Origin: Styela clava
Lineage: Eukaryota
DNA: 64,000 bases
Assembly (NCBI RefSeq): GCF_964204865.1
Contig: NC_135251.1
Location: 24,366,001 to 24,430,000, forward strand
Direction: 5' to 3'
Positions 26,221 to 40,500 of this stretch are shown one piece after another; position 1 is the first letter of the stretch, and each line of letters opens with the position of its first letter. The notes under the pieces are model-generated. The model saw nothing but the letters and a program-made list of their open reading frames with translations, was not told the DNA's origin and ran no database searches. Made by a program: the position numbers and the translations under genes.

Positions 26221-29118
26221 GTTATTCAATTTTCATGAATAATCAAAAATATTGTCATTTACGATCATCTCAGCAGTGATACAGAAAAATTTGTATTGCT
26301 GACTGAGTTTCCTGACATGACAATTTGCTGTACAGCTCTAGATAATCATCATTATCGTACAATTTATTTACAAAAGGTGGAGATACAAATATATTCAGAT
26401 AGGAACTGGTGGCAAAAAATATATATATATATAAATATATAGGAGTCTACGAAACAAACTTTTCCGCAGCTACAGTATAAACTGCTGTGGCACCCATAGA
26501 ACGATGTCGATAACGTCATGTAAGATGAAGTAGCACTAAACATCGGGTAGGAAGTCGCGTTGGTCAAATGATTTTAGCATGTATAGGATTGATCACGACA
26601 GAGACCGAAGACGCTTTAACAAAAAAAGCTTGCCACATAGAAGAGGAAATACAAAACCCATCAACCGAAACATCAAAAGAATAGGTCATTTAAATAATCC
26701 ATGTATATATATAGATGTTTTTATCAGGCGGCTATTTGATCGCACAAAGGCAAAATATATAAATGTTGAGCGTGTAGTTATTGGTTTGGGCAATTGCATA
26801 TTTCTATTCATTTAATTTCATTATTTTACATTTATTTAGTTTTCAAATTTATTTGTATTGTTGATCTCATTTTCTCTCGGTTGTTTTTATCATGCACTTA
26901 CTAGCATTTCTGGTTTGCTTTTGCTTTTGTAGTTAGGCCTACGATCCATTCTGATAGTATTTATTTCTGATACACTTGTATAACACAGGAACTTTCCAAT
27001 AGGTGGTACAACATTAAAACTTTTGTTTTAGTCTTAACTGGAAAATGGCATCCGGTGTGGATTGTTCATTGCAAGTCAGCTACGACCAGTGATTTCCCTA
27101 CACCCCCCCTATAGGGGGTGAACACCCCCCTAAAATTTCAAACACCCCCCCTAATTTTGAGGTGCGATTCCACACTGAGGGGTTCTAAACCGCAGTTTGC
27201 GGGCCAATTACGGCCCGCGTGACGATTTAAAATGGCCCGCCGAACTTGAGTGAAATAGTTTAACCCTTCATGTGATACCTTTTGAGTTTTAGATACCGTC
27301 TATTGTTACATCATTATCACAGTTTAAGCACGTTTATTTCGTAACAATTGAATTATTCCGGTATCTTATGTATAGGTATGGGTATTATGATTACACACTG
27401 CAGTATTTTAGATGTCAGCCATATATTAAGAAGTCAGATGTCACAAAACGAAAACTAGGAACTGAAAACAGACGTTTTTTAGATGAATGACAGCGTTTTT
27501 ATTTCTTTATTGAAAAGAATCAAACTTCAGCGATTTGTCTCCTTACAAAATATTTCAGTTCTGAAGGAACACAACATTATGATCAGTTGACGAGCGTATT
27601 TCAAAATTTAATTCATACAAAAGTCAAACAAACATGTTCAAAAAAACTAGAAATGTGTAACAAAACAAGCCATAAGTAGCCATTCATACAATGTCAGATG
27701 AGCAAGTAACTTCATTAGTCACTATCAGTTGCAAATTACTTGTTGAAACGTAGTAGTATATATGTACGGTTGAAAGCCGTGCTTGTTATCTATTCCCCGA
27801 GAATTCTATCAGCTAAATAATATAATTATTGATTTATATGCTAGGCTATTTTGGGCCTATTTCTCAAAATTTTCTCAGGGCGCTTAAGCGCGCCCTGAAC
27901 CCCAGCCGTGCCGTCCCGCACTTTTCCTCGCTCCCCTTTTCTGGCCCTACAATTTCATTCTGCTCTGGATTTTGGCTCGCCGTCAATCAACTTGGGGCCC
28001 CCCCATGTACATCGTTTCTTAAATACATACCATTTTTTAAGAATACAAATAGCCTAGTTTTATCTCTAATAGCAAATTATTTACCCCCCCCCCTAAATTT
28101 TGAAACACCCCCCCTAAAGAGAAAAGCTGGGGAACATACTGGCATATTCGGCAAGTTTGAGTGGAAATCCTATATCTGTGTATGGGAACACCGACCACAG
28201 AGATTATCAAATCAGCTTCAGCTTTCCTCAGTCAATTTGACAACGGATGAATTTAGAGCAGGGGTCGGCAAACTTTTGTCGCTCGCAGGCCAAATTTAAG
28301 GGTTGTAAGTCATTGGCGGGACGCATATATTTTTTGGAAAGTTGAAAACCGAACGGATGATACTTTTTATAATAAAAATCAAGCAGTGATACATCTCTCA
28401 AAAAGAATATAAATTTATTTCCCCATTGCATTGCATCTCAAAGAAATTCCATTTGAATATTTTTGGCACCATTGAACCCTTTGCACTTAGCATCAACTTT
28501 TCCGCGTTTTGTTACCATTTGTTTAATTATAATTAAATTATAGGTTCATTAAACGAGTAGTTGTGAATTTCATACTTGTTAGATTATAATATAATTTAGT
28601 CTACACTTGTCTCACAATGAATCCTGATACGTAAAGAATATAATCGTCAAAACAGCTGCTTTGCTATATTTTACTGACCATTAGTCGCAGCGTCAGTTAA
28701 TAGCTCATATTGGGGTTTTGTCCACACATGAGAGGCAACGGTTTTTGAAGTTTCGGGTTACGGTACAGAGCTCATTAAAAAAATAAACATGATATTTTTT
28801 ATTTCATTTTATTCAAAGAAAACGCAAAACAGTGGTACCGCCACCTGCACTGGTTATAATTCGCACAATTGGTTTTAGTTAAAACGGAGAGAGTGCGCCT
28901 TATAGTTCGTAAAATAATACAGAATGATAACCCTGCCAGTTCATTATTTCTACCTCTGAGTGTCGGAGGTATATTTAATACAAGCAAATATTTTCAGTCA
29001 TTAAGGAAAAATAGCACATCCAATCACGGATGCCATTCACTATTGATATGCTCCAGTACATAGTCATAGTGTAATAAATAAGTAATAAAATATGAAATTA
29101 ATTAAAGCATCTGCAGGA

Positions 29119-30978
29119 TCAATGTGTTGATTTCATAGCTATAAGATTTTTAGTCATGTCAAAACTGTTGCTGTCTGGCTGAAGACTAATTCTTTTGCCA
29201 TCATGGAGATCGGCACATAAAAACCCACTGCTGTCAATCCCAACTATCACACCTTTAGTAAAAACTTTGTTGCTTGGGTGAGAAATTTGAATTTCTTGAT
29301 TGCTGTGTATCCAGTATTTGTAATATAATTTTAGGAATTCGTCTGCCCCATTTACCTGATAAGAGTTTATCATATCCTCTAAACATGACAATGTTCGTGC
29401 TAAAACTTCTTCGCATGTTAAAGGTGAATATGGAATATTTGCTATTCTTATAGCATCATTGATACACTTGGTTGGAAAATCATTGCTGACATTAACTCCA
29501 CAACCGATCGTCGTAATCAGATTGTTATTGAACATCGTAGACTTGACCAAAACACCACCAATTTTAATGTCTCTTCCAATGTAAATATCATTTGGCCATT
29601 TTACCCGTAGATCTAAATTGACCAGCTCAGGAATTGAACGTAACGCGTGAACAACAGATACAGTTGTCAAATGTTGCAAAACAGACATACGTTGACCCAA
29701 ATTTGACCATTTAGATACTGACAATACATGGGAAAACATGGCCGTACCAATTGGACTTAACCACTTATTACCACCCCTCCCTTTACCTTGAGTTTGCTGT
29801 TTAGAAATACAAGTCACAGTAATGTCATTTTTATGTAACATCTTCCCTGTAAAAGGTTCTACAATGTCCATTGTAGAAGTGACAACATCTGAGTAAATAA
29901 TGGTTTTTGCAAATCTTTTTGTTTTCAAATTCTGTTGGAATTTTATCCAATCAAAATTTATTGAATTTGATGCCGATTCAGGATTCGGACAATGAAGGAC
30001 AGGTACGAATGGGTTTGTGGTATTACTTGATACCAATGACTGCATCAATTCACTCGTAAAACCTTGGACTTGCATAAATTTTAGGCTTGTTGAAGTGCCT
30101 TTCAAGACACATGATTCAGGATGGACAATATCCAAGTCTTTAAAAAATGCAGACAGTTCATCAGGATTTTCACTCAGGATAACACACGGTGTCTCTTTTG
30201 GAATTGACATGTTCAATTCAGACATAGTTGCAATATCCAACTCCCGGAAAAAGTAATTCAACAAAACTTTGCTATTTTCATCCACTGAGCAATCTTGACA
30301 ACAATGCTTGCCTGAGTCACAGCATGTCAACAAAGGCAGCGAGCAATGCAATATTTTCCCACCATTTCGAACTGATATTATTGCAACAGGATCCAGTTGG
30401 GAATCATTAAATTTTGAAGATAATACAACACTGTTTGACGCTGATTGAAAACTATCAGAGGATTGAAACACTCGCCCGCAGAATTCTAAAACGGGAGCTT
30501 CAGAAAATGGTTTGTTAAATTTATCTATGAAACAGCATTTATCAACAGGTTCTATGTCGCGAGTTTGGAATTTAAAATATTTTGCAACTTCCGAAGAAAA
30601 GCTAAGAATCTTTCCATGTAAAGAAAGGTACTTTTCGAGCAAAACAATTTCAGATTCATCCAGGTCAACATTTTTACTTGCTGTACTTGGTACAACTAAC
30701 AGTTGGCAATTGTCCATCCATGGAGCACTGGCAGCCTCTTCATATCGTAAACGATAAACAGCAAACTTATCTAACGGGAGGCATCTTTCTACAGCAACTG
30801 TAAGACAATCTTTTGGACAGTTTTGAATAGATTTTGGTTGGTATACCAGAATATTCGGAGGTTTCATTACTGAGCCTTTAGAATTATTAGCATTGATATT
30901 TAAAATTGGCTTGATATAACTCTGGTGTGCTTGAATACGTCTAAGCATTAAGATAGGATCAACAATTAAATTTGCCAT
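29119..30978 (-). CDS. HLCS: Biotin--protein ligase / holocarboxylase synthetase, single exon, 619 aa
   Basis: KPPNILVY N-terminal domain; biotin-ligase motifs STMD, QTQGKGRGGNKWLSP, KWPNDIY, KIGGVL, IGCGVNV; C-terminal LQPDSNSFDM..NLI. Confidence 0.95.
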   Translation of the reverse strand: MANLIVDPILMLRRIQAHQSYIKPILNINANNSKGSVMKPPNILVYQPKSIQNCPKDCLTVAVERCLPLDKFAVYRLRYEEAASAPWMDNCQLLVVPSTASKNVDLDESEIVLLEKYLSLHGKILSFSSEVAKYFKFQTRDIEPVDKCCFIDKFNKPFSEAPVLEFCGRVFQSSDSFQSASNSVVLSSKFNDSQLDPVAIISVRNGGKILHCSLPLLTCCDSGKHCCQDCSVDENSKVLLNYFFRELDIATMSELNMSIPKETPCVILSENPDELSAFFKDLDIVHPESCVLKGTSTSLKFMQVQGFTSELMQSLVSSNTTNPFVPVLHCPNPESASNSINFDWIKFQQNLKTKRFAKTIIYSDVVTSTMDIVEPFTGKMLHKNDITVTCISKQQTQGKGRGGNKWLSPIGTAMFSHVLSVSKWSNLGQRMSVLQHLTTVSVVHALRSIPELVNLDLRVKWPNDIYIGRDIKIGGVLVKSTMFNNNLITTIGCGVNVSNDFPTKCINDAIRIANIPYSPLTCEEVLARTLSCLEDMINSYQVNGADEFLKLYYKYWIHSNQEIQISHPSNKVFTKGVIVGIDSSGFLCADLHDGKRISLQPDSNSFDMTKNLIAMKSTH

Positions 30979-30993
30979 GTAAATTCAAGAATA

Positions 30994-31230
30994 TCATATG
31001 CTTGCTTTGTGAGTTGCAGAATGATTTGTTTTAATAAGTTTCTCTTTTTCTTTTTTGCAAGACTCTAAGATGTGCTCTTTATCAGTTAAAAAAAACAAGT
31101 TGCTGTTTTCTTGTTTTTTAAAAACCTTTCCAGTATTTTTCATGCTTTGAATTTCTCCCACCAATATATCCAAGCCATGTAAACGTTGCCGAGTCTCTAT
31201 GTCACCAGATACTTTAATTTCAGTAGACAT
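30994..31230 (-). CDS. ASDURF: ASDURF-like prefoldin-beta-type microprotein, 78 aa
   Basis: LVGEIQSMKNTGKVFKKQENSNLFFLTDK resembles the human ASDURF core as I recall it ([29 protein letters not shown]). Layout is helix, beta-hairpin, helix. A splice acceptor tttag|g lies upstream at 31256. Confidence 0.8.
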   Translation of the reverse strand: MSTEIKVSGDIETRQRLHGLDILVGEIQSMKNTGKVFKKQENSNLFFLTDKEHILESCKKEKEKLIKTNHSATHKASI

Positions 31231-32226
31231 TTATAATATAGCTGCAGAGTTGACACCTAAAACACAGGTATGAATAAACATCAGAACATGGTAAGCCATC
31301 GCTTTTTTATTTCAGGTTGCTGGTCCAGCCAGGTTTTGTATTTGAACAGAAGAACCGTCATTAAGTGTGGGAAGCTTTGATGAGGCTAATCTATGCAATA
31401 ATTTATTTACGGCTCTGAGCATTGCAGGATTGTTTTTTTAGAGCAATGACTTTGTTCAATTGATTGAATATTGTAACTAGCTCTGACCATCTTTTCTACC
31501 ACGTTGACTACCGGTGGTGACTCATGGGAGACAGTCCCATTGTTGCATCGTAATTCACCAGATATTCCTAAAGTTTTTGATTTTTTCTAGCATCACCGTA
31601 ACCTTTACACGTCCTTTACACAACCTGGACTGCAGCTGAGCCGTAACACTCTGTTAGAGCTGGAGTCAAGTTTATCATATCCAATGAAGCCGGACCTGGC
31701 ACAAATTATGGTGGCTTCCTTTTCTAACCATTGCATTATATTTCACATTAATAATTTTCCAATATTTGCTAATAAACTATTTTAAATCCAACATCATTGC
31801 TTTCAGCAAAATTTTTCTTGCCCTTTTTTGGAAGAGCGCATAAAAACTGAATTTGAATAAATTATTAATGATTGGTAAATGCGCTTACCAAAAAAAAATC
31901 AACGTGCGTAATGAGTTACGTAGATTTATCGTATTTTCCTCATTTAACAACAATAAATACCGCTGCATCGTGGTAGACTCATGGACCTTTCCCCGATCTT
32001 TGACCCCCGCAAAATTCTTTACCATTGCAAAATTGTCGGGGCTATTTTAAGAGTGCTTTTGCGAGTTGGCGCCTGTAAAATGGGGTATGTGTTTCAAACC
32101 ATCATTATGATTCATCGCATACAACAATCTGTACCGGTACAGGTAAAGAATTTTAGCCTAGTCTGTCTATCACAGCTATTCCTACACTAATTTTTTATTA
32201 CTGCAATTAAATTAGACCTCCTAAGA

Positions 32227-33118
32227 CAGTGGTTCTTAAAGTATGGGTCGCGACCCAAACATGGGTCGCGGAAGGTTTAAAAATGGGTCGCGACAAGGTC
32301 GTCACTGCAAGGGCAATCTAAGAGGAGAAGGAAGAATTTTCAGCTTTCCCAATGTTTCAATTTAGCTTCTAAACTCTGGTATTTAAAAATAATGAAATAT
32401 AAAATTTCATTCACGGAAAGAACTGTCTTGAGCTCATTGTTACATCACAATTCTGATATGCCAGTCACGTGTATTATTTTTATGGTATCGGTAACCATGC
32501 ACGTCGCTTGTCGTTGTGTTGACCGCGTGGAATGTCGTCTTAGTGGATTAAAATAACCAAAAATGGGTGTCTTTTTGGTAATGTAAATTGTAATAGACGA
32601 CGCAATGAAAAAGCTCGCTTCTCGACATTAGATTATTCAATATCTAGAGAAAATGTGACTTCATCTCGAGGCACCATTTACCGCGAACGAAGCAGTGTGT
32701 GCGCATTTGATGAGTAAAAAGTTGTATATTGCGAGAGATACCGAAGGCCAGCTAGGATGTCGTGCTTGCGACGGACAGCGGACGCCTTTTCTGCTACAAT
32801 TCGCGACAAGGCACTTGTGCGAGCGAGGATATTTGGCACTGACGGTTATCAAAACTAAGCTCGCAATCGCCTCGATACCCGTGACAACTAGCGTATTGCG
32901 TTGGGTAAAATAGAGCTGTGTATTGAAGATATAATGAAAAGGAAATTTCAGTTTCATCAATCTCACTGAGTCAATGGGCTGTTTCTAATAAATAGTTGTC
33001 TGTATTTGAGTCAAACTGTACTAACATTAAAAACACATTTTGCGTTATTTAGGATTGGGTCGCGAGTATTCATAAAACTCAGATTTGGGTCGCGCTCGAA
33101 AAAGTTTAAGAACCATTG
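32227..33118. mobile_element. Non-autonomous hAT (Charlie-like) element
   Basis: TIR cagtggttcttaaa...tttaagaaccattg; TSD tcctaaga/tcctagga; GGGTCGCG subterminal repeats. Confidence 0.85.
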
Positions 33119-34325
33119 TCCTAGGAAGACAGAGTGATCATTGAATTATCTGATTTATATTTAAGTTTCCGCATCACAACTGAAAACTAACCAATACAGT
33201 TCAAAAATTCGAAAACGAGGTAATGTTTACGACCGCGCCTGAAAATCTGTCTAAGTGAGAAAAGTGTCTGAGCGGATGCGAAAAGGGCAAGTGCAGTTTC
33301 AAGTATTTTGTGGCGTCTGCAGCTGCCGCAAAACCATGGCGGTATTTCCATACCATGGCCGCTACGGCCGAACCTACGGCGACTGACTTTTTAGCTGCCA
33401 CAAACCAATGACGAGCTGCCGTTACCGCGGCAGCAAATTGAAAACCCAATGGCAGGTAAAATATTGCTGCCGTAACCACGGCAGGTGGGCCGTAAAGACA
33501 GGGCTGTCCCTTATGGTGACAAATATTGGGTAAGTTGGAACGATTTTCTTATGGATACAGTTTTGACGGATTTGGGGGGGTTACGGTTAGGCTTTAAGTA
33601 GATATAATTCCGCATGATCAATTAAAATCTGGTACATTAATTTGTGAATATACCGTCAATACTGATTACTAAATACTGAAAAGCGCTATAAAACCTATGG
33701 CAAGAGCTGCCGCGGTTTATTCGTGGCAGGAGCTGCCATGAAGTGGTAAGAACTGCGCCTCGAAAAGGGAGCATTGTTACGTCACTTTTCGCAACTTGGT
33801 GATTAGCCAATGTCACGAAGTAAATAAGGAAGTCGATGCTCGGGGAAAGGTCCATTGGACAGACTGGCCTTTTAGGCAGGAGAGATATATGGTAAGAATG
33901 ACCGGACACTCGAAGAACGGATGTGACATCACAGTGTAAAAACATCTTATCCTTTTTAAGTGATCCGAATTTCAAAGCAGCTGTCTTGTGAAAATTGCGG
34001 TCCAATCAGAACAAAAACCACGATGATCAAGAAACTTTCCTGGAAGCCATCACCCTTATATCGAGACCCTTCGTCACTTTCGTTAAAATACTACGAATTT
34101 AGGTCCAATTGGCAATGAGATAAACAAACATGGATGAAAAATAAGAGGATTAATCCGATACTTGTCTTGGCCCTACATATATGTTTGGCTGTGGATAATT
34201 AAAGATATAAGTTTTCTTAAAACGAAATCAGCAGTATGTTATGGCTATCATTGAACACAACACTTCCCACAGCAAATCCCTACTAAATGGTCATCAATAG
34301 AAAACACCTAAATCTTCAATTTTCA

Positions 34326-34398
34326 TTTATTTAGCAGAATCAGTAAAAAAAATCCAAGTGTGCAATGCCAGCATATGATGCAGCCTTGGGGTGCAGAG
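34326..34398 (-). promoter_or_regulatory. PIE-like U1A-binding hairpin and poly(A) signal in the SNF/U1A 3' UTR
   Basis: Minus strand reads cUCUGCACc CCAAG GC UGCAU cau AUGC ug GC AUUGCAC a CUUGG, followed by AAUAAA 28 nt after AUUGCAC (AUUGCAC at 34366-34360). Confidence 0.55.
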
Positions 34399-34545: not shown

Positions 34546-37500
34546 TCATTTTTTAGCAAAAGTGACATGCATTGCGTGAGTTGGAGAAATTTTGAAACCT
34601 TCCAGTGAGTCTTTTGCAGATGCAGATTGTCCTTCATTATCGAATTCAACAAACGCAATGTCATGTCTGCCAGGAACCATACGTATTTCTTTAAATCCTG
34701 GGAACCTGAACATTTAACGTACAAAGTTAATCTTCTTAACTCATGAAACTAAAAATAACAGTAATATAAGAATTGACACTATCAGTTGTTGAACAATCCT
34801 TCCAAGCGAGCAACTTTCAGATAAATACCTGTTGCATAAAACTTTAAGCATTCCTTCATCTGTTTCCTCTGGCAAATTGTCCAAAAACAAAATATGATTT
34901 GGTGGATTGTTTCTGCCATCATCAGTTGGCTTCGTCCCAGGTACCACTACAAATGGCAAAATATGGAAATTGAACAAATAGCAAGAAAACAAAAAAATTA
35001 AATTTTTTAAAATCTAGTTTCAGACTAATTTCCATCTTCCATTCTTCAAGTTTTTAATAGCGATGTAATGAATCCAATTTTTACACATAAGTTGAATATT
35101 AATAACGTACAAACACTGCTACAAATAAATATCTTATCAAAGCCTACTTGGCATCATTCCTGGCATGGCTGCGGCTGCTGGTCCATTTGATGCTCCTTTT
35201 TTTGCCTGAAAGTGATGTAGATACATTTAAATAATATTTAAAACTACTGAATAACATGCAATGTTCCTAAGAGTTGAAAATCAACCTTGGATTTAGTTTC
35301 TTTCTTCTTTTTCTTCTTTGGTCTTTCCTGAAATGTTCCTTTGAGTTTCGCAATTATATCTGAATCTTTCTTGGAATAAGCGATTCTCTATACATCACAA
35401 GAAGCAAACAACAAAAATCAGTATAAATTGTTAAAAATATAAATTAACTTTTGTCAAATTGCACAGATATAGATAAAAAAGGGTTAATTTCAGAAGTGTT
35501 ACCATAGGTTTGTCGTAAAATGGAAAACCCTGCATTGAGCGTATTGCATTAGATGCACTCGATATTTCTTTGAAGATCACAAAAGCCTGCCCACGCATCT
35601 TCAATGTTTTAAGAGCCACAATGTCCAATATTTGTCCAAATTGTGAGAAGATCGCATAAAGTGACTTTTTTAACTCTGGAAAAAAATATTCATTATGTCA
35701 GTCAATTGCGCTGTTGTTAAAAAACTGACTGGGATATTTTTATGATAAAAACCACTAGGCCTACCCAAAAACTCATCTATTGAATACAGCAATATGGCTG
35801 GTATACCAGTATGCTGATTAGAGGTAAGATCGGGACCAAAAATTCCAGCCTGACCCGACCCCGACCCAACTGGATTTGCAGGCCAGACTCACCTGAGCCT
35901 GAATAATTAACTGGATTCGCAGGCCCGAGCCCGAAGCAAACCCGAAATTCTTAAAATAAGTCACGAAAATTTTGCAATGGTAAAGTATAGGAAGAATATT
36001 TCCGGGGGTCAAAGGTCGGGGAAAGGTCCATTACAGCTTTTTCTCCGTTTTACTCACATTATTTCTTTTATAACAAGTATTCCTTAGATTAGTATCCACA
36101 CATAGTTTTAGTATATATTTTTATAAAAAAAGTCAGCGATAGAGAAGCCCGACCCGAACATAATGATTGACATTTCAGGCCCAACCTTACCCGAATTTCG
36201 GGTCGGGCTTCAGATCTTAGCTCTAATGCTGATACAAGTCTATATTCTCTATAACTTCAGACAAAAAAATTGACATTTTACCACCCAAAATACTCTCAGG
36301 CTTGCAAATCCGCGCCCGAAAACGAGAGTCTAGGCATACTCTCGTCGACCTCCTAACGGAATTCGAAAGATTCAATGACGTCATAGTGACGTCACATATA
36401 CTCCCGTCCCAGGAAAATGTTACGCGAGTCAGGCACGAGTCAATGTGTCTAATTATATCTACGCACACACTATCTACACACCTACTTTCGCTCGATAAAC
36501 ACTACTCCGTCGGTACCCTCGTTCTGCGATATTGCTACTTGCGAGCGTCTCATTAAATACTAATCAAGATAGCTGCGTGCTCTGCGACGCCGTTTTCCCC
36601 GCACGACGTAAATGACCTAATTATGTATCGGGGTAATCGACCATTTTGCCATTTTGCAGGTTTTGCTGCAAACTGTGGACTGTGAATAACTCTCAACAAG
36701 TTACCCTACAAAGAAAATAATAACTCAAGTTTTGCAAAATAAAGGGAGGAACTTTAATAAACGGCAGTCGCCGTTGCCATCGCCTTTTTTTTTTTTTTTT
36801 TTAATAAACAAAACCATTCATGCAGTCTGGCATTTGCCGTACAAACTGAAATCTATAAAATAAGTTCGCATGTAGCAGATGAGTTCATGCAAAATAAACA
36901 TCGCACAGAAAGAACGAAATTGAATATTAAACGCTAATCGCCGCCCGTCGACTTCGCATCATTTAAAATGTATAAAAAGAAAGGTTAGAAATTGTGTCGA
37001 CGAACAAAGAAATGCGTGAGACGCTTTCAGGTTCACATATCACAGTTTTAGTCTTCTTCCGACGAGCTATCGTCGATGTTTATTAGTTGAGTCTGTACCA
37101 AGCTGGGCTTTGCCGTTTCCAACCCCCCTAAAATTGAATTTATACGTCGTTTCACGAGACCTCGTTCAGACGTCCCATCGCTTCCCATAGATCGGGCGGA
37201 AGCCTTGTTGACCAGATTTTCTCGAATGGCCCCGTCTTCGAACTGTTCTTTTCGTGTGGCAATTAATAGAAGATCTTTTATCATATTGTGTCCGAGATGT
37301 GATCGCCAATCAGTGAGAATTCGCCATAAACAACTGAACCCTCTTTCGACAACAGCATTTGAGAATGGTAAGCAAAGCACTAACTCGACAACGATTAACA
37401 AATTTTTATACGCCTCCTTTTTTCGCTGGTGCAACTTGTGCCAAAAGTCGGTAGTGCTCAAATCTTTGTAAACCTCATTTCCCTGGACGTCATACTTCAA

Positions 37501-40500
37501 ATCATCCCATTCTTTCAAGCATGCACCCTTCTCGCACCCAGCTGCGTGTAGAGGTACTTTGAAGTACTCAAAGACTTGTGAAAGATCCTGATTGCCATAT
37601 TCAGGGACGGACGCATTAATCCCGCCATCCGACATCAAGATTTCAGGGTTCAGCCATGATAACTTACTCAAAATGTTTTCTTGTTCTTCTATTTCTGTAA
37701 ATCGCTCGTCCAGGCAATCACGCAGATTTCTTATGCATTGCGATCTTGTTGTTTGGGATCTCTGGATGATGGTTTCCTCTGCAGAATGAAAAACCACGCT
37801 TTCCTCGTGTTCCAGGAGTCTGGCGGTCGGTGTTTCACGCCTTTTACAAGTAATGCGTATTGCCTTCGTTTGTCCACCATCTTCGTGTCTGGTAAAACGG
37901 AACGGAAGCGGAGTGCAATTTAGGTCGCCCCTGTCATAAGCATCGAGCGCTTCTCGCTCTGCAGGACCGCCGCGAAGTTCCATAGAAGTTAATTTCATTT
38001 TCAACCGTTTTATCTGCTTGGTAGCGTCAATAATGGATGACCCGTCATGATCTGATTGTATTGCGATTGACGTGGCAGATACCCAATTTACGATATCCTC
38101 GTATTGGCGACATAGGATATAGAACTTGAAGCTGTGAAGATTAACAAGAAATTTCTCAGCCTTCATATCTGACTCAGCCTCCCTCTGGTTAGTGAAATGA
38201 TGGATGTAAACAATCCAATTTGTTTTTAGCGCATGGAGTGCGTTGAGTGTGTGTGCCACAAATCTTGTGCCTTGCGACTTTGGTACACTAACAACCGCGG
38301 TCTGCAACTTTTCTGCCGCATTACATGCGGCGGCCCATTCTTTAGGGCTATTCCGAAAATGATAATATGTGTCAATAAGGAAGTCAATAACTTGTTTGAA
38401 ATGGGGGGTCAATGCGTCTTTCGATGCTAGTTCAATTCGATGTGAATAGCAATGTAGTTTGATTAGCCGACCAGGGCACACGTCCTCCCATTTTTTAAGT
38501 AAACCCGTTTTACGCCCAAAGTTAACAGCAGCGCCATCGGCGCCGGCCCCGATAATTTTTGAAGAAAAAGGCTTAATAAGTTCCACAAGATTTCAATGGG
38601 TGTCTCACAATTTGTTGTTATATCGGGAATCAGGAAACTCAACAGAGAGCGCAATGTAGCGTGGTACAAATTGTTAGCGTCCACTCGAACATATTCCTTC
38701 ATTGAAATCAAGTCAATTTCGTGTACAGCTGGTTTGCATTCGTGCGCTATTCTTATGTAAATTAGTTCCGACTCGTACGATAACTTGCGCTTGGCGACTG
38801 TTGACCCATCCACCATCCAGCTTAAAAAATTTACTTTTTTGTGCACTTCATTTCTCATTGAGGACAATATCTCCTCCGCGAGAATATGTATAAAGGCTTT
38901 ACAACCTTCTCTGTTACCATAGGACGTGGTTATTTTGCCGCCATTGTCTGCGCACAGTTGTAATAAGTCCGCAAACGCATTGAAAGGCAGTTCCTTCCTA
39001 GAGACATACAGTGAAGTACGAACAAGAGGTTTTATGGCGTTCTCCGCCCTCTGTTTTTGGCAGCCCCATAAGCGAGCGATACTTGTTTGCGTCGGGAGCT
39101 TCCCATTCTCAATTTCGACACACTTTAAGTGGCCCTCGGAATTGAGGTGTCGTTCTAAATTATATCTTAAAATCCAGTTGGTGCCATTCTCCCCGTAAGT
39201 CGTCACATCATTAACAACTTTGCCTCCATAGCCGCGCTGTATTCTGTCACAATGTTTTTTGCATACAATGCATGCTGCATGTACGACTTTGGTATTATCT
39301 TCGTTGAAACCGAACGTAAAACTGTCCTTTAATCTGTTTGGCCAAAACTTCCAGGCCGCTACAGAGACGGACCTTGATTTTTCCTCCATTTACTCAATCA
39401 TACAATTCATAATATCTCCTGTGGTATTTTTAAACAAACAAAAAAACGGTGTTACGCAAAGATACCCTTTTACCGGTAATTTACAACAAAACAGCCGTTA
39501 ATATAACTAATTAATTACACTAGCCCTAGTCTTACCGACATCTCATCTTTGTTAGTCTGCAACACTTCTATTAAATTCATAATACGCATTTGCAGTCTGC
39601 CTTATTACAAGGGAACATTCTGCATTCGCCAACGCCAAGTCGTCCGGAGGCGTGCCCGTGCTTGATTCCTCGCTTTTCGCTGTAATGTACTATTGTGACA
39701 TCATAAACCATCGCCCGCAAACGATTTTACGTCACTAAAGAATAAAGAGAGAGAGGCGGCGGAAAAAAATCGCCTCGGACTCTCGTGTACTGCTGGACGC
39801 GAGTAATGACGTTTTTTACGGGAGTAATAGCTAGACTCGGGTAGGGCAAAATACGCGAGTCTAGACTAGAGTATGACTCGCGTACTCGCGTAGATTTGCA
39901 AGCCTGTACTCTTATAAGAGTATATTAACTATAGGAATTGTGTATGCTGGTACGGGTTTGCATAGATACCGAACAAATACCATTGGCAAATTGGGTCTCC
40001 TGAAGTACGCGCCCTCAAGTACTTCTAGTGGGTGTAGCGCAGCGATTTTTGCTTATGATATTCCTAACCCTCACCTAAGTTCGTTACCCAAAAATTACAT
40101 CACTCGACATCACAATTGCGTCATAGAGCTTGCTAAAGTATTGCTACGATTTTCCGAAATAAACTATAATAAACTCACTATTGCCAGCGACCTCTCTCTC
40201 TCTCTTATCGTTATGACGGGAAAACGAGATAAATTGCTTGCTCGATTTCGGATGATTGTTTGCGCGACATACTGTATACTTTGGAGGGCCGTATGACGTC
40301 TCTGCGACTTCGCAGTGATGTAATTTTCGGATGTTGTACACAGGTAGGGGTTAGGAATGACATATGCAAAAATTGTTGAACCAGGCCAACTAGAAGTATA
40401 AGTGGGTGTGTACTTCAGGAGACCCTGTAAATTGGTCAACCATTCAACACATAGGCAGTAGAGATACCGTACTGAAATGGATCAACCAACTACTTCATTA

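Follow-up and report, generated by a model that had tools for sequence, protein, structure and literature searches.

[quoted passage not shown] In Arabidopsis, ASDURF is a stand-alone gene (AT1G49245), uncoupled from ASNSD1 (PMC10893143). Approximately 20% of Ciona genes are organized in operons; among the operon genes 38% are single-exon, as is the 5'-most gene of 60% of the operons (PMC2760879). In Ciona operons without intercistronic DNA, the upstream gene's 3' end is paired with the spliced leader (SL) acceptor of the downstream gene, the upstream poly(A) site being the downstream acceptor AG, and mutually exclusive products were proposed for such operons (PMC1488885).

In the present study, we analyzed a 64-kb stretch of Styela clava DNA (the window, to which all positions refer unless another contig is named), in which the original prediction had placed a 78-aa ASDURF ORF 15 nt upstream of the ORF of HLCS on the same strand. 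The positions of both ORFs, the gap, and the absence of AG and of a poly(A) signal from the spacer were confirmed by reading the sequence directly. The features are as follows.

31241..31258, minus strand: two candidate acceptors (3' splice or trans-splice sites) preceding the start of ASDURF (by consensus only)
30994..31230, minus strand: ASDURF orthologue, ORF of 78 aa with its TGA stop (by Pfam, alignment, AF2 and Foldseek)
31063..31095, minus strand: best acceptor-like stretch within the ASDURF ORF (by sequence pattern; use as an acceptor putative)
31001..31006, minus strand: last two AGs ahead of the HLCS ATG, inside the ASDURF ORF, 5-9 nt before its stop
30959..30997, minus strand: 12-codon out-of-frame mini-ORF, whose ATG (30995-30997) overlaps the ASDURF stop and which crosses the HLCS ATG
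30979..30993, minus strand: 15-nt spacer without AG and without AATAAA or ATTAAA (by direct reading)
29119..30978, minus strand: HLCS, holocarboxylase synthetase / biotin-protein ligase, intronless, 619 aa (by Pfam and RefSeq cluster)
28798..28979, minus strand: candidate poly(A) signals of HLCS, one ATTAAA (28974-28979) and two AATAAA (28808-28813 and 28798-28803) (by direct reading)

The 78-aa ORF is a genuine member of the ASDURF family. A Pfam profile search matched it to PF21975 (ASNSD1-SEP) with 31.8 bits (E 1.6e-7), above the curated cut-off of 27 bits; in a six-frame scan of the Styela clava genome the same ORF scored 30.1 bits and was the only match above this cut-off, and thus ASDURF is single-copy. 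Relatives found by phmmer (E down to 1e-10) all have the core Q-x-N-S-N-x-F-F, and the ASDURF core K-V-Y-K-Q-Q-x-N-S-N-x-F-F-L is present in the Styela protein. In an alignment of 24 sequences, the family-invariant residues E26, Q40, N42, S43 and F47 are all kept. The AF2 model (pLDDT 84) has a helix at residues 5-29, strands at 36-39 and 46-49, and a helix at 51-76, and beta subunits of prefoldin filled the first ten Foldseek ranks (TMq up to 0.77, rmsd 1.4 A), with E-values of only about 0.02. The predicted fold is therefore a helix, a beta-hairpin and a helix, as in prefoldin beta. The identity proposed originally was thus borne out by the profile score, the invariant residues and the predicted fold, and by homology Styela ASDURF most likely acts as a beta-type subunit in the PAQosome's prefoldin-like module.

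Other searches with the 78-aa protein gave little. A word-based protein search found no match, and the same search with a family alignment as the query found nine proteins only; a sequence search of the PDB gave only chance-level matches to cytochrome b562 fusions. The exact sequence is not in the collection of 15 billion proteins searched, and thus ASDURF appears to be unannotated in Styela clava. This fits the original suggestion that so short an ORF had been missed by annotation, as RefSeq does have named Styela clava entries for HLCS and ASNSD1. The ORF cannot be extended within its exon, because an in-frame TAA (31231-31233) stands directly ahead of its ATG. The context of this ATG had been described as weak, a view that the data contradict: with A at -3 and a close likeness to the contexts in which VMA21 and ASNSD1 of this genome start, it is typical and adequate, and the HLCS ATG (T at -3, G at +4) is the weaker of the two.

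The downstream ORF matches the Pfam families BPL_LplA_LipB (E 1e-19) and BPL_C (E 3e-6), and falls in the same 90%-identity cluster as XP_039260480.1, annotated as biotin--protein ligase-like from Styela clava. HLCS is also single-copy, with one match in the genome, and four relatives in Logan (P0002-P0005) begin at the same aligned Met.

Styela and vertebrates have the same family (PF21975), core motif and fold, and in both ASDURF is the upstream of two conserved same-strand ORFs. However, the partner differs. ASNSD1 of Styela clava is an intronless gene on another chromosome-scale contig (G000:C8:13264183-13265889), and neither the profile scan of the genome nor inspection of this locus revealed an ASDURF ahead of it. 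The sole ASDURF adjoins HLCS instead, so the vertebrate arrangement behind the name, ASDURF upstream of ASNSD1, does not exist in Styela clava. The gap of only 15 nt is a further difference from vertebrates, and ASDURF has one exon in Styela and four in human (PMC10187264). As in Arabidopsis, the same prefoldin-like subunit is uncoupled from ASNSD1, although Styela ASDURF is an upstream cistron and the Arabidopsis gene stands alone. In a metagenome scan for ASDURF relatives, two of eight loci (L008 and L012) have ASDURF followed by ASNSD1, and none has HLCS as the partner, although these short contigs from unknown taxa say little about tunicates. The original prediction was therefore right that the partner is a different one, but its reading that the uORF arrangement was kept or re-evolved goes beyond the evidence. 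Special uORF logic is not needed for the new partner, because ordinary tunicate operon formation suffices.

Chance adjacency of ASDURF and HLCS is not plausible: assuming approximately 20,000 genes in 377 Mb, a rough estimate of the chance that a single-copy element lies 15 nt or less upstream of a gene ATG on the same strand is about 4e-4. The pair has the spacing by which operons are recognized in a tunicate genome (neighbours on one strand with a gap below 100 nt), and both ORFs encode conserved proteins, as is required of a bicistronic mRNA. It resembles the Ciona operons without intercistronic DNA in that it is a tunicate pair of nearly touching same-strand genes with unrelated functions, single-exon, and with a small 5'-most gene (PMC1488885; PMC2760879). 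However, no AG follows the ASDURF stop, so that no site can serve as both upstream 3' end and downstream acceptor with the upstream ORF intact; the Ciona scheme would truncate ASDURF, and use of an SL in this species or at this locus is hypothetical. A second very tight pair, VMA21-SNX25, lies on another contig of the same genome (G000:C17), its ORFs 9 nt apart on one strand. It has likewise a small upstream ORF (105 aa in VMA21), a large downstream ORF and a similar A-rich start context. In contrast to ASDURF, VMA21 ends in TAG, and the AG of this stop, 9 nt ahead of the downstream ATG, can act as both acceptor and 3' end; the TGA of ASDURF offers no such site. In keeping with a tunicate host, cellulose synthase and GH6 domains lie 2 kb apart on one strand in the Styela clava genome.

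We tentatively propose that ASDURF and HLCS are transcribed together as one unit, after the manner of a tunicate operon, and we read the pair as a variant of such operons, not as proof of a conserved uORF logic. This reading is preferred because operons, which are rich in single-exon genes, hold approximately 20% of Ciona genes, and the VMA21-SNX25 pair is counted in its favour. Since no 3' end fits a 15-nt spacer without AG and without a poly(A) signal, any RNA that expresses ASDURF must run into the HLCS ORF. From this geometry, and because the last AG is upstream of the ASDURF stop, the ASDURF message would be structurally dicistronic. The pre-mRNA may be handled in two ways. If it stays unresolved, and cis-splicing or SL trans-splicing sets its 5' end at about 31256 or 31241, the RNA would give ASDURF. 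Alternatively, trans-splicing at an acceptor within the ASDURF ORF (31065-31078 or 31001-31006) would give a monocistronic HLCS mRNA. Such alternatives would match the proposal of mutually exclusive products for Ciona operons without intercistronic DNA. Resolution of the Ciona type at the junction itself is impossible, because the ASDURF stop is TGA and the last AG is inside its ORF; cleavage at either AG in 31001-31006 leaves ASDURF without its stop codon. HLCS could be translated by way of trans-splicing to an acceptor inside ASDURF, by reinitiation or by leaky scanning.

Acceptor-like sites do exist ahead of both ORFs. At the site named originally, a pyrimidine-rich stretch leads to TTTTAG|G, with the AG at 31257-31258, the exon start at 31256 and a pyrimidine fraction of 0.70 in the 20 nt upstream; this is a candidate at the consensus level, and a second one has its AG at 31242-31243, the exon start at 31241 and a pyrimidine fraction of 0.60. 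Within ASDURF, the stretch 31063..31095 consists of a T8 run (31088-31095), a branch-like CTGAT and then AGs at 31077-31078, 31075-31076 and 31065-31066. The internal candidates are weak, being AAG or GAG or having a poor pyrimidine tract beside the AG, and the T8 run may be due to coding alone (the conserved N-L-F-F-L). No SL RNA gene was found in the Styela clava assembly with patterns based on the Ciona SL: the 18-nt SL-plus-GT pattern had two one-mismatch matches and its reversed control three, a chance-level result; the 16-nt SL itself occurs twice, close to the chance expectation, with no GT after it; and an SL-plus-Sm-site pattern had no match. The weak internal acceptors, the explanation of the T8 run by the FFL codons, the TGA stop where VMA21 has TAG, and the failure to find the SL RNA gene are counted against the operon reading. 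We also considered that the spacer, which resembles the Ciona SL, might be a spliced-leader relic from a retroposed HLCS cDNA. This was rejected, as the 16-mer from the spacer is scattered over the genome in unrelated contexts (78 matches against 24 for a control) and has no common flanks.

The chief alternative, possible but rather unlikely in our view, is a purely bicistronic mRNA in the style of vertebrate ASDURF-ASNSD1, a precedent described previously (PMC13303939; PMC10187264). Most ribosomes would translate ASDURF and a minority would reach HLCS by reinitiation or leaky scanning, the low output being adequate for a catalytic enzyme. The spacer without AG and the TGA stop are in keeping with this, as a cut at the junction would damage ASDURF. 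So is the RNA itself. Its 161 nt about the junction are rich in A, and 199 of 200 shuffles were more structured (z +1.81), a property in favour of scanning or reinitiation; the same folding gave no stable structure at the junction, and a search of the window against Rfam gave no match. However, eukaryotic reinitiation is disfavoured by a long upstream ORF and a short gap, and here the upstream ORF has 78 codons and the gap only 15 nt. Leaky scanning would mean bypassing four AUGs on the way to an HLCS AUG with T at -3: that of ASDURF, which has A at -3, and three more at 31178, 31143 and 30997 between the two start codons. SL trans-splicing is moreover a ready alternative in tunicates. The specific version in which HLCS is translated by termination-reinitiation across 15 nt after 78 codons, so that ASDURF would have been an upstream cistron twice (of ASNSD1 in vertebrates and of HLCS in a tunicate), we regard as improbable.

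Overlapping transcripts that are initiated independently, with an HLCS promoter inside the ASDURF ORF or a short way upstream of it, and an ASDURF mRNA that reads into HLCS, are compatible with the geometry, and the sequence does not bar an internal start site; this is nevertheless quite improbable, since no evidence of a promoter was seen, the ASDURF ORF is short (237 nt) and constrained by coding, and the recurring tight same-strand pairs of this genome fit operons better. It is very unlikely that the ORF is a silent relic or just a part of the HLCS 5' leader, at most a regulatory uORF with an irrelevant peptide. Its absence from the protein collection searched would agree with that, but it is the sole ASDURF of the genome, intact, with all invariant residues and a confident prefoldin-beta predicted fold, and a relic in decay would hardly be expected to retain all of them. 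Least credible of all is an ASDURF-HLCS fusion protein. Although both ORFs are in one frame, with starts 252 nt apart, a common frame has a one-in-three chance of arising by accident, and two in-frame TGAs (the ASDURF stop at 30994-30996 and another in the spacer at 30985-30987) would have to be read through or spliced out; the spacer has no AG for a mini-intron, and the HLCS start in RefSeq is the same Met as in the four relatives.

A probable subunit of the PAQosome is thereby recovered for Styela clava that was missing from the protein collection searched. The presence of ASDURF apart from ASNSD1 and next to HLCS in a tunicate argues against an obligatory functional link between ASDURF and ASNSD1. 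As the AG on which the Ciona scheme relies is missing from the ASDURF stop, this locus would allow a clean test between internal trans-splicing and true reinitiation in the expression of a tunicate downstream cistron. If the pair is merely a compacted operon, it would be an ordinary though unusually tight example. The termination-reinitiation version, if true, would imply that selection favours expressing ASDURF from a leader position, for instance so that its output is coupled to the downstream enzyme or that enzyme is throttled.

The original prediction, that an ORF of 78 aa is followed after 15 nt by the ATG of holocarboxylase synthetase (HLCS) on one strand, was borne out by the ORF coordinates. 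The features of the junction are as follows (window coordinates; ORFs and spacer as read from the sequence).

30994-31230, (-), ASDURF ORF, 78 aa, ATG start
31178, (-), further ATG, out of frame, 12 codons
31143, (-), further ATG, in frame
30997, (-), further ATG, out of frame, 12 codons, overlapping the HLCS ATG
30979-30993, (-), spacer between ASDURF and HLCS, exactly 15 nt
29119-30978, (-), HLCS ORF, 619 aa, ATG start

A TAA codon lies in frame directly 5' of the ASDURF ATG, so that this exon holds the whole of the small ORF. The two ORFs share a frame, with their starts 252 nt apart and three further ATGs and two in-frame TGA codons in between. As claimed, the spacer has no AG, and both AATAAA and ATTAAA are also missing from the 15 nt. 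The exon start at 31256 fits an acceptor-like site, and a second AG gives a start at 31241; both are consensus matches only. The context of the ASDURF ATG had been called weak; with A at position -3 and a close likeness to the VMA21 and ASNSD1 starts of the same genome, it counts in our view as typical. The weaker of the two is the ATG of HLCS, which has T at -3.

The small ORF is a member of the ASDURF family. As had been anticipated, it matched the Pfam profile PF21975 (ASNSD1-SEP) with 31.8 bits, above the curated cut-off of 27 bits. When phmmer was run in full against 1.84 billion representatives, 26 matches came out at E <= 1e-3 (best 1e-10), of which 24 were retrieved, leaving out the coiled-coil-like multi-stretch matches P0129 and P0137. 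All but one of those retrieved are short proteins with a common core of approximately Q-Q-x-N-S-N-x-F-F-L, the other being a hagfish fusion model (P0136), and all invariant residues of the 24-sequence alignment are present in the window ASDURF. The AlphaFold2 model from this alignment (mean pLDDT 84) consists of a helix (5-29), a beta-hairpin (36-39 / 46-49), and a second helix (51-76). A Foldseek comparison with the PDB placed prefoldin beta subunits in each of the first ten ranks (TMq up to 0.77, rmsd 1.4 A), with E-values of only ~0.02 for a protein of this small size. The exact 78-aa sequence was not found in a collection of 15 billion proteins; thus, the ORF appears unannotated, in line with the expectation that annotation often misses such short ORFs.

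The large ORF is holocarboxylase synthetase, with Pfam matches to BPL_LplA_LipB (E 1e-19) and BPL_C (E 3e-6), and its cluster includes XP_039260480.1, named Styela clava. Four Logan-derived relatives (P0002-P0005) begin at the same aligned Met-Ala, so that 30978 is a conserved HLCS start. The gene is intronless and single-copy in the genome.

In vertebrates, ASDURF is an upstream ORF of ASNSD1, over four exons (PMC10187264; PMC13303939). In a six-frame PF21975 scan of the Styela clava genome (377 Mb, 380 contigs), the window ASDURF was the only match above the cut-off; two other matches (~18 bits, E ~0.9) were dismissed as noise. The sole Asn_synthase locus of the genome is an intronless 568-aa ORF on another contig, C8.

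G000:C8:13264183-13265889 (L004:652-2358), (+), ASNSD1, intronless

This ORF is ASNSD1 by its Atlas name, is identical in sequence to XP_039249743.2 of Styela clava, and is colinear with hagfish ASNSD1 (55% identity over the C-terminal 231 residues, E 7e-83). An acceptor-like CTGTAG lies 12 nt before its ATG, and no ASDURF-like ORF was found upstream. Because the only ASDURF adjoins the single-copy HLCS, and ASNSD1 on C8 is without one, the proposed change of partner is correct. Both ASNSD1 and HLCS are intronless, and either may have arisen by retroposition.

The canonical order, ASDURF then ASNSD1, was found on two metagenome contigs (L008 and L012). A hagfish model (P0136 / P0147; Myxine, UniRef), "ASNSD1-like isoform X2", joins an ASDURF N-terminus to an ASNSD1 C-terminus, and is probably a gene-model artefact of the bicistronic locus. 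Arabidopsis has ASDURF as a gene of its own (PMC10893143), and thus ASDURF without ASNSD1 is not unprecedented. Among 57 papers mentioning ASDURF, neither an HLCS partner nor a tunicate ASDURF was found in the titles and the texts examined. Another metagenome contig (L011, Ga0115102_10036526, 52-2961 +) carries three same-strand ORFs with gaps of ~90-150 nt, namely a PACS-1-like ORF, an RPB11/RPAC19-like subunit, and, at the contig end, an ASDURF-like ORF with no Pfam match at E 1e-3; such spacing may reflect a polycistronic unit or a very compact gene order in a marine eukaryote.

Upstream of ASDURF, on the same strand, are exons of a U1A/U2B''/SNF-type RRM protein (34546-35628, (-)), with the last coding exon ending at 34546 and AATAAA at 34326-34331. 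With ~3 kb between this end and ASDURF, the distance is too large for a tight operon. Most of the intervening DNA looks transposon-derived from its nested inverted repeats: a ~908-bp element (32219-33126) with 22-nt terminal inverted repeats, 91% complementary, is enclosed by a second inverted pair (24 nt, 88%; 31981-33855), leaving ~725 nt of unique sequence upstream of ASDURF. Farther away, two long ORFs (512 and 308 aa; 37048-39389, (-)) overlap each other; by eye, the C-terminus resembles a hAT-type dimerisation region, which suggests a transposase or a domesticated one.

The assembly also contains a cellulose-synthase domain and, 2 kb beyond it in the same orientation, a GH6 domain, a pairing that is a hallmark of tunicate CesA. 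In Ciona, operons hold about 20% of the genes; 38% of operon genes are single-exon, as is the 5'-most gene in 60% of operons (PMC2760879). These operons leave no DNA between cistrons: the poly(A) site of the upstream gene coincides with the spliced-leader (SL) acceptor of the downstream one, and mutually exclusive products have been proposed (PMC1488885). By analogy, the ASDURF-HLCS pair fits this profile. A comparable pair in the same genome involves VMA21, which has a second paralogue on contig C1 (L033).

L032 (G000:C17:8039701-8042889), 1408-1737, reverse complement, VMA21 stop and downstream ATG

Between VMA21 (105 aa) and the start codon of a long downstream ORF there are 9 nt. The VMA21 stop is TAG, and the AG in it can double as acceptor and as 3' end of the upstream gene, just as the Ciona scheme has it. 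In contrast, ASDURF ends in TGA, and thus this solution is unavailable at the HLCS junction; the TGA stop is what sets the locus apart.

Since the 15 nt hold no processing signal, there is no place for a separate ASDURF 3' end ahead of HLCS. By this geometry, any ASDURF-coding RNA must run on into HLCS, and a bicistronic mRNA would be required for ASDURF. The leading explanation of HLCS expression, to which we give a little less than an even chance, is SL trans-splicing to an acceptor within the ASDURF ORF. The final AGs before the HLCS ATG (31001-31006) fall within this ORF, so that cleavage or trans-splicing there would strip ASDURF of its stop codon. Within the ORF, the stretch that looks best as an acceptor has a T8 run followed by CTGAT and by AGs at 31065-31078; against such a reading, the T8 run codes for the conserved FFL motif, and pyrimidine content is mediocre at the internal AGs, which stand in AAG, GAG or TAG contexts. 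In the genome, the 18-nt Ciona SL-plus-GT pattern gave only one-mismatch matches at chance level, the 16-nt SL occurred at chance level and never with GT after it, and an SL-plus-Sm-site pattern had no match.

The other remaining route, to which we give a lower but still appreciable chance, is that HLCS is translated off the dicistronic RNA through reinitiation or leaky scanning. Of 200 dinucleotide shuffles, 199 fold more stably than the A-rich junction RNA (30920-31080, (-); z +1.81), which is mildly favourable, but an upstream ORF of 78 codons, a gap of only 15 nt and four AUGs to pass all weigh against it. An internal promoter driving HLCS is improbable, and readings of the pair as a relic or a fusion are more improbable still. 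As for the suggestion that the uORF arrangement was kept or re-evolved, the partner has indeed changed, but a more fitting description of the pair is a tunicate operon-like unit of unusual tightness, with a junction that is not resolvable in the canonical Ciona way.
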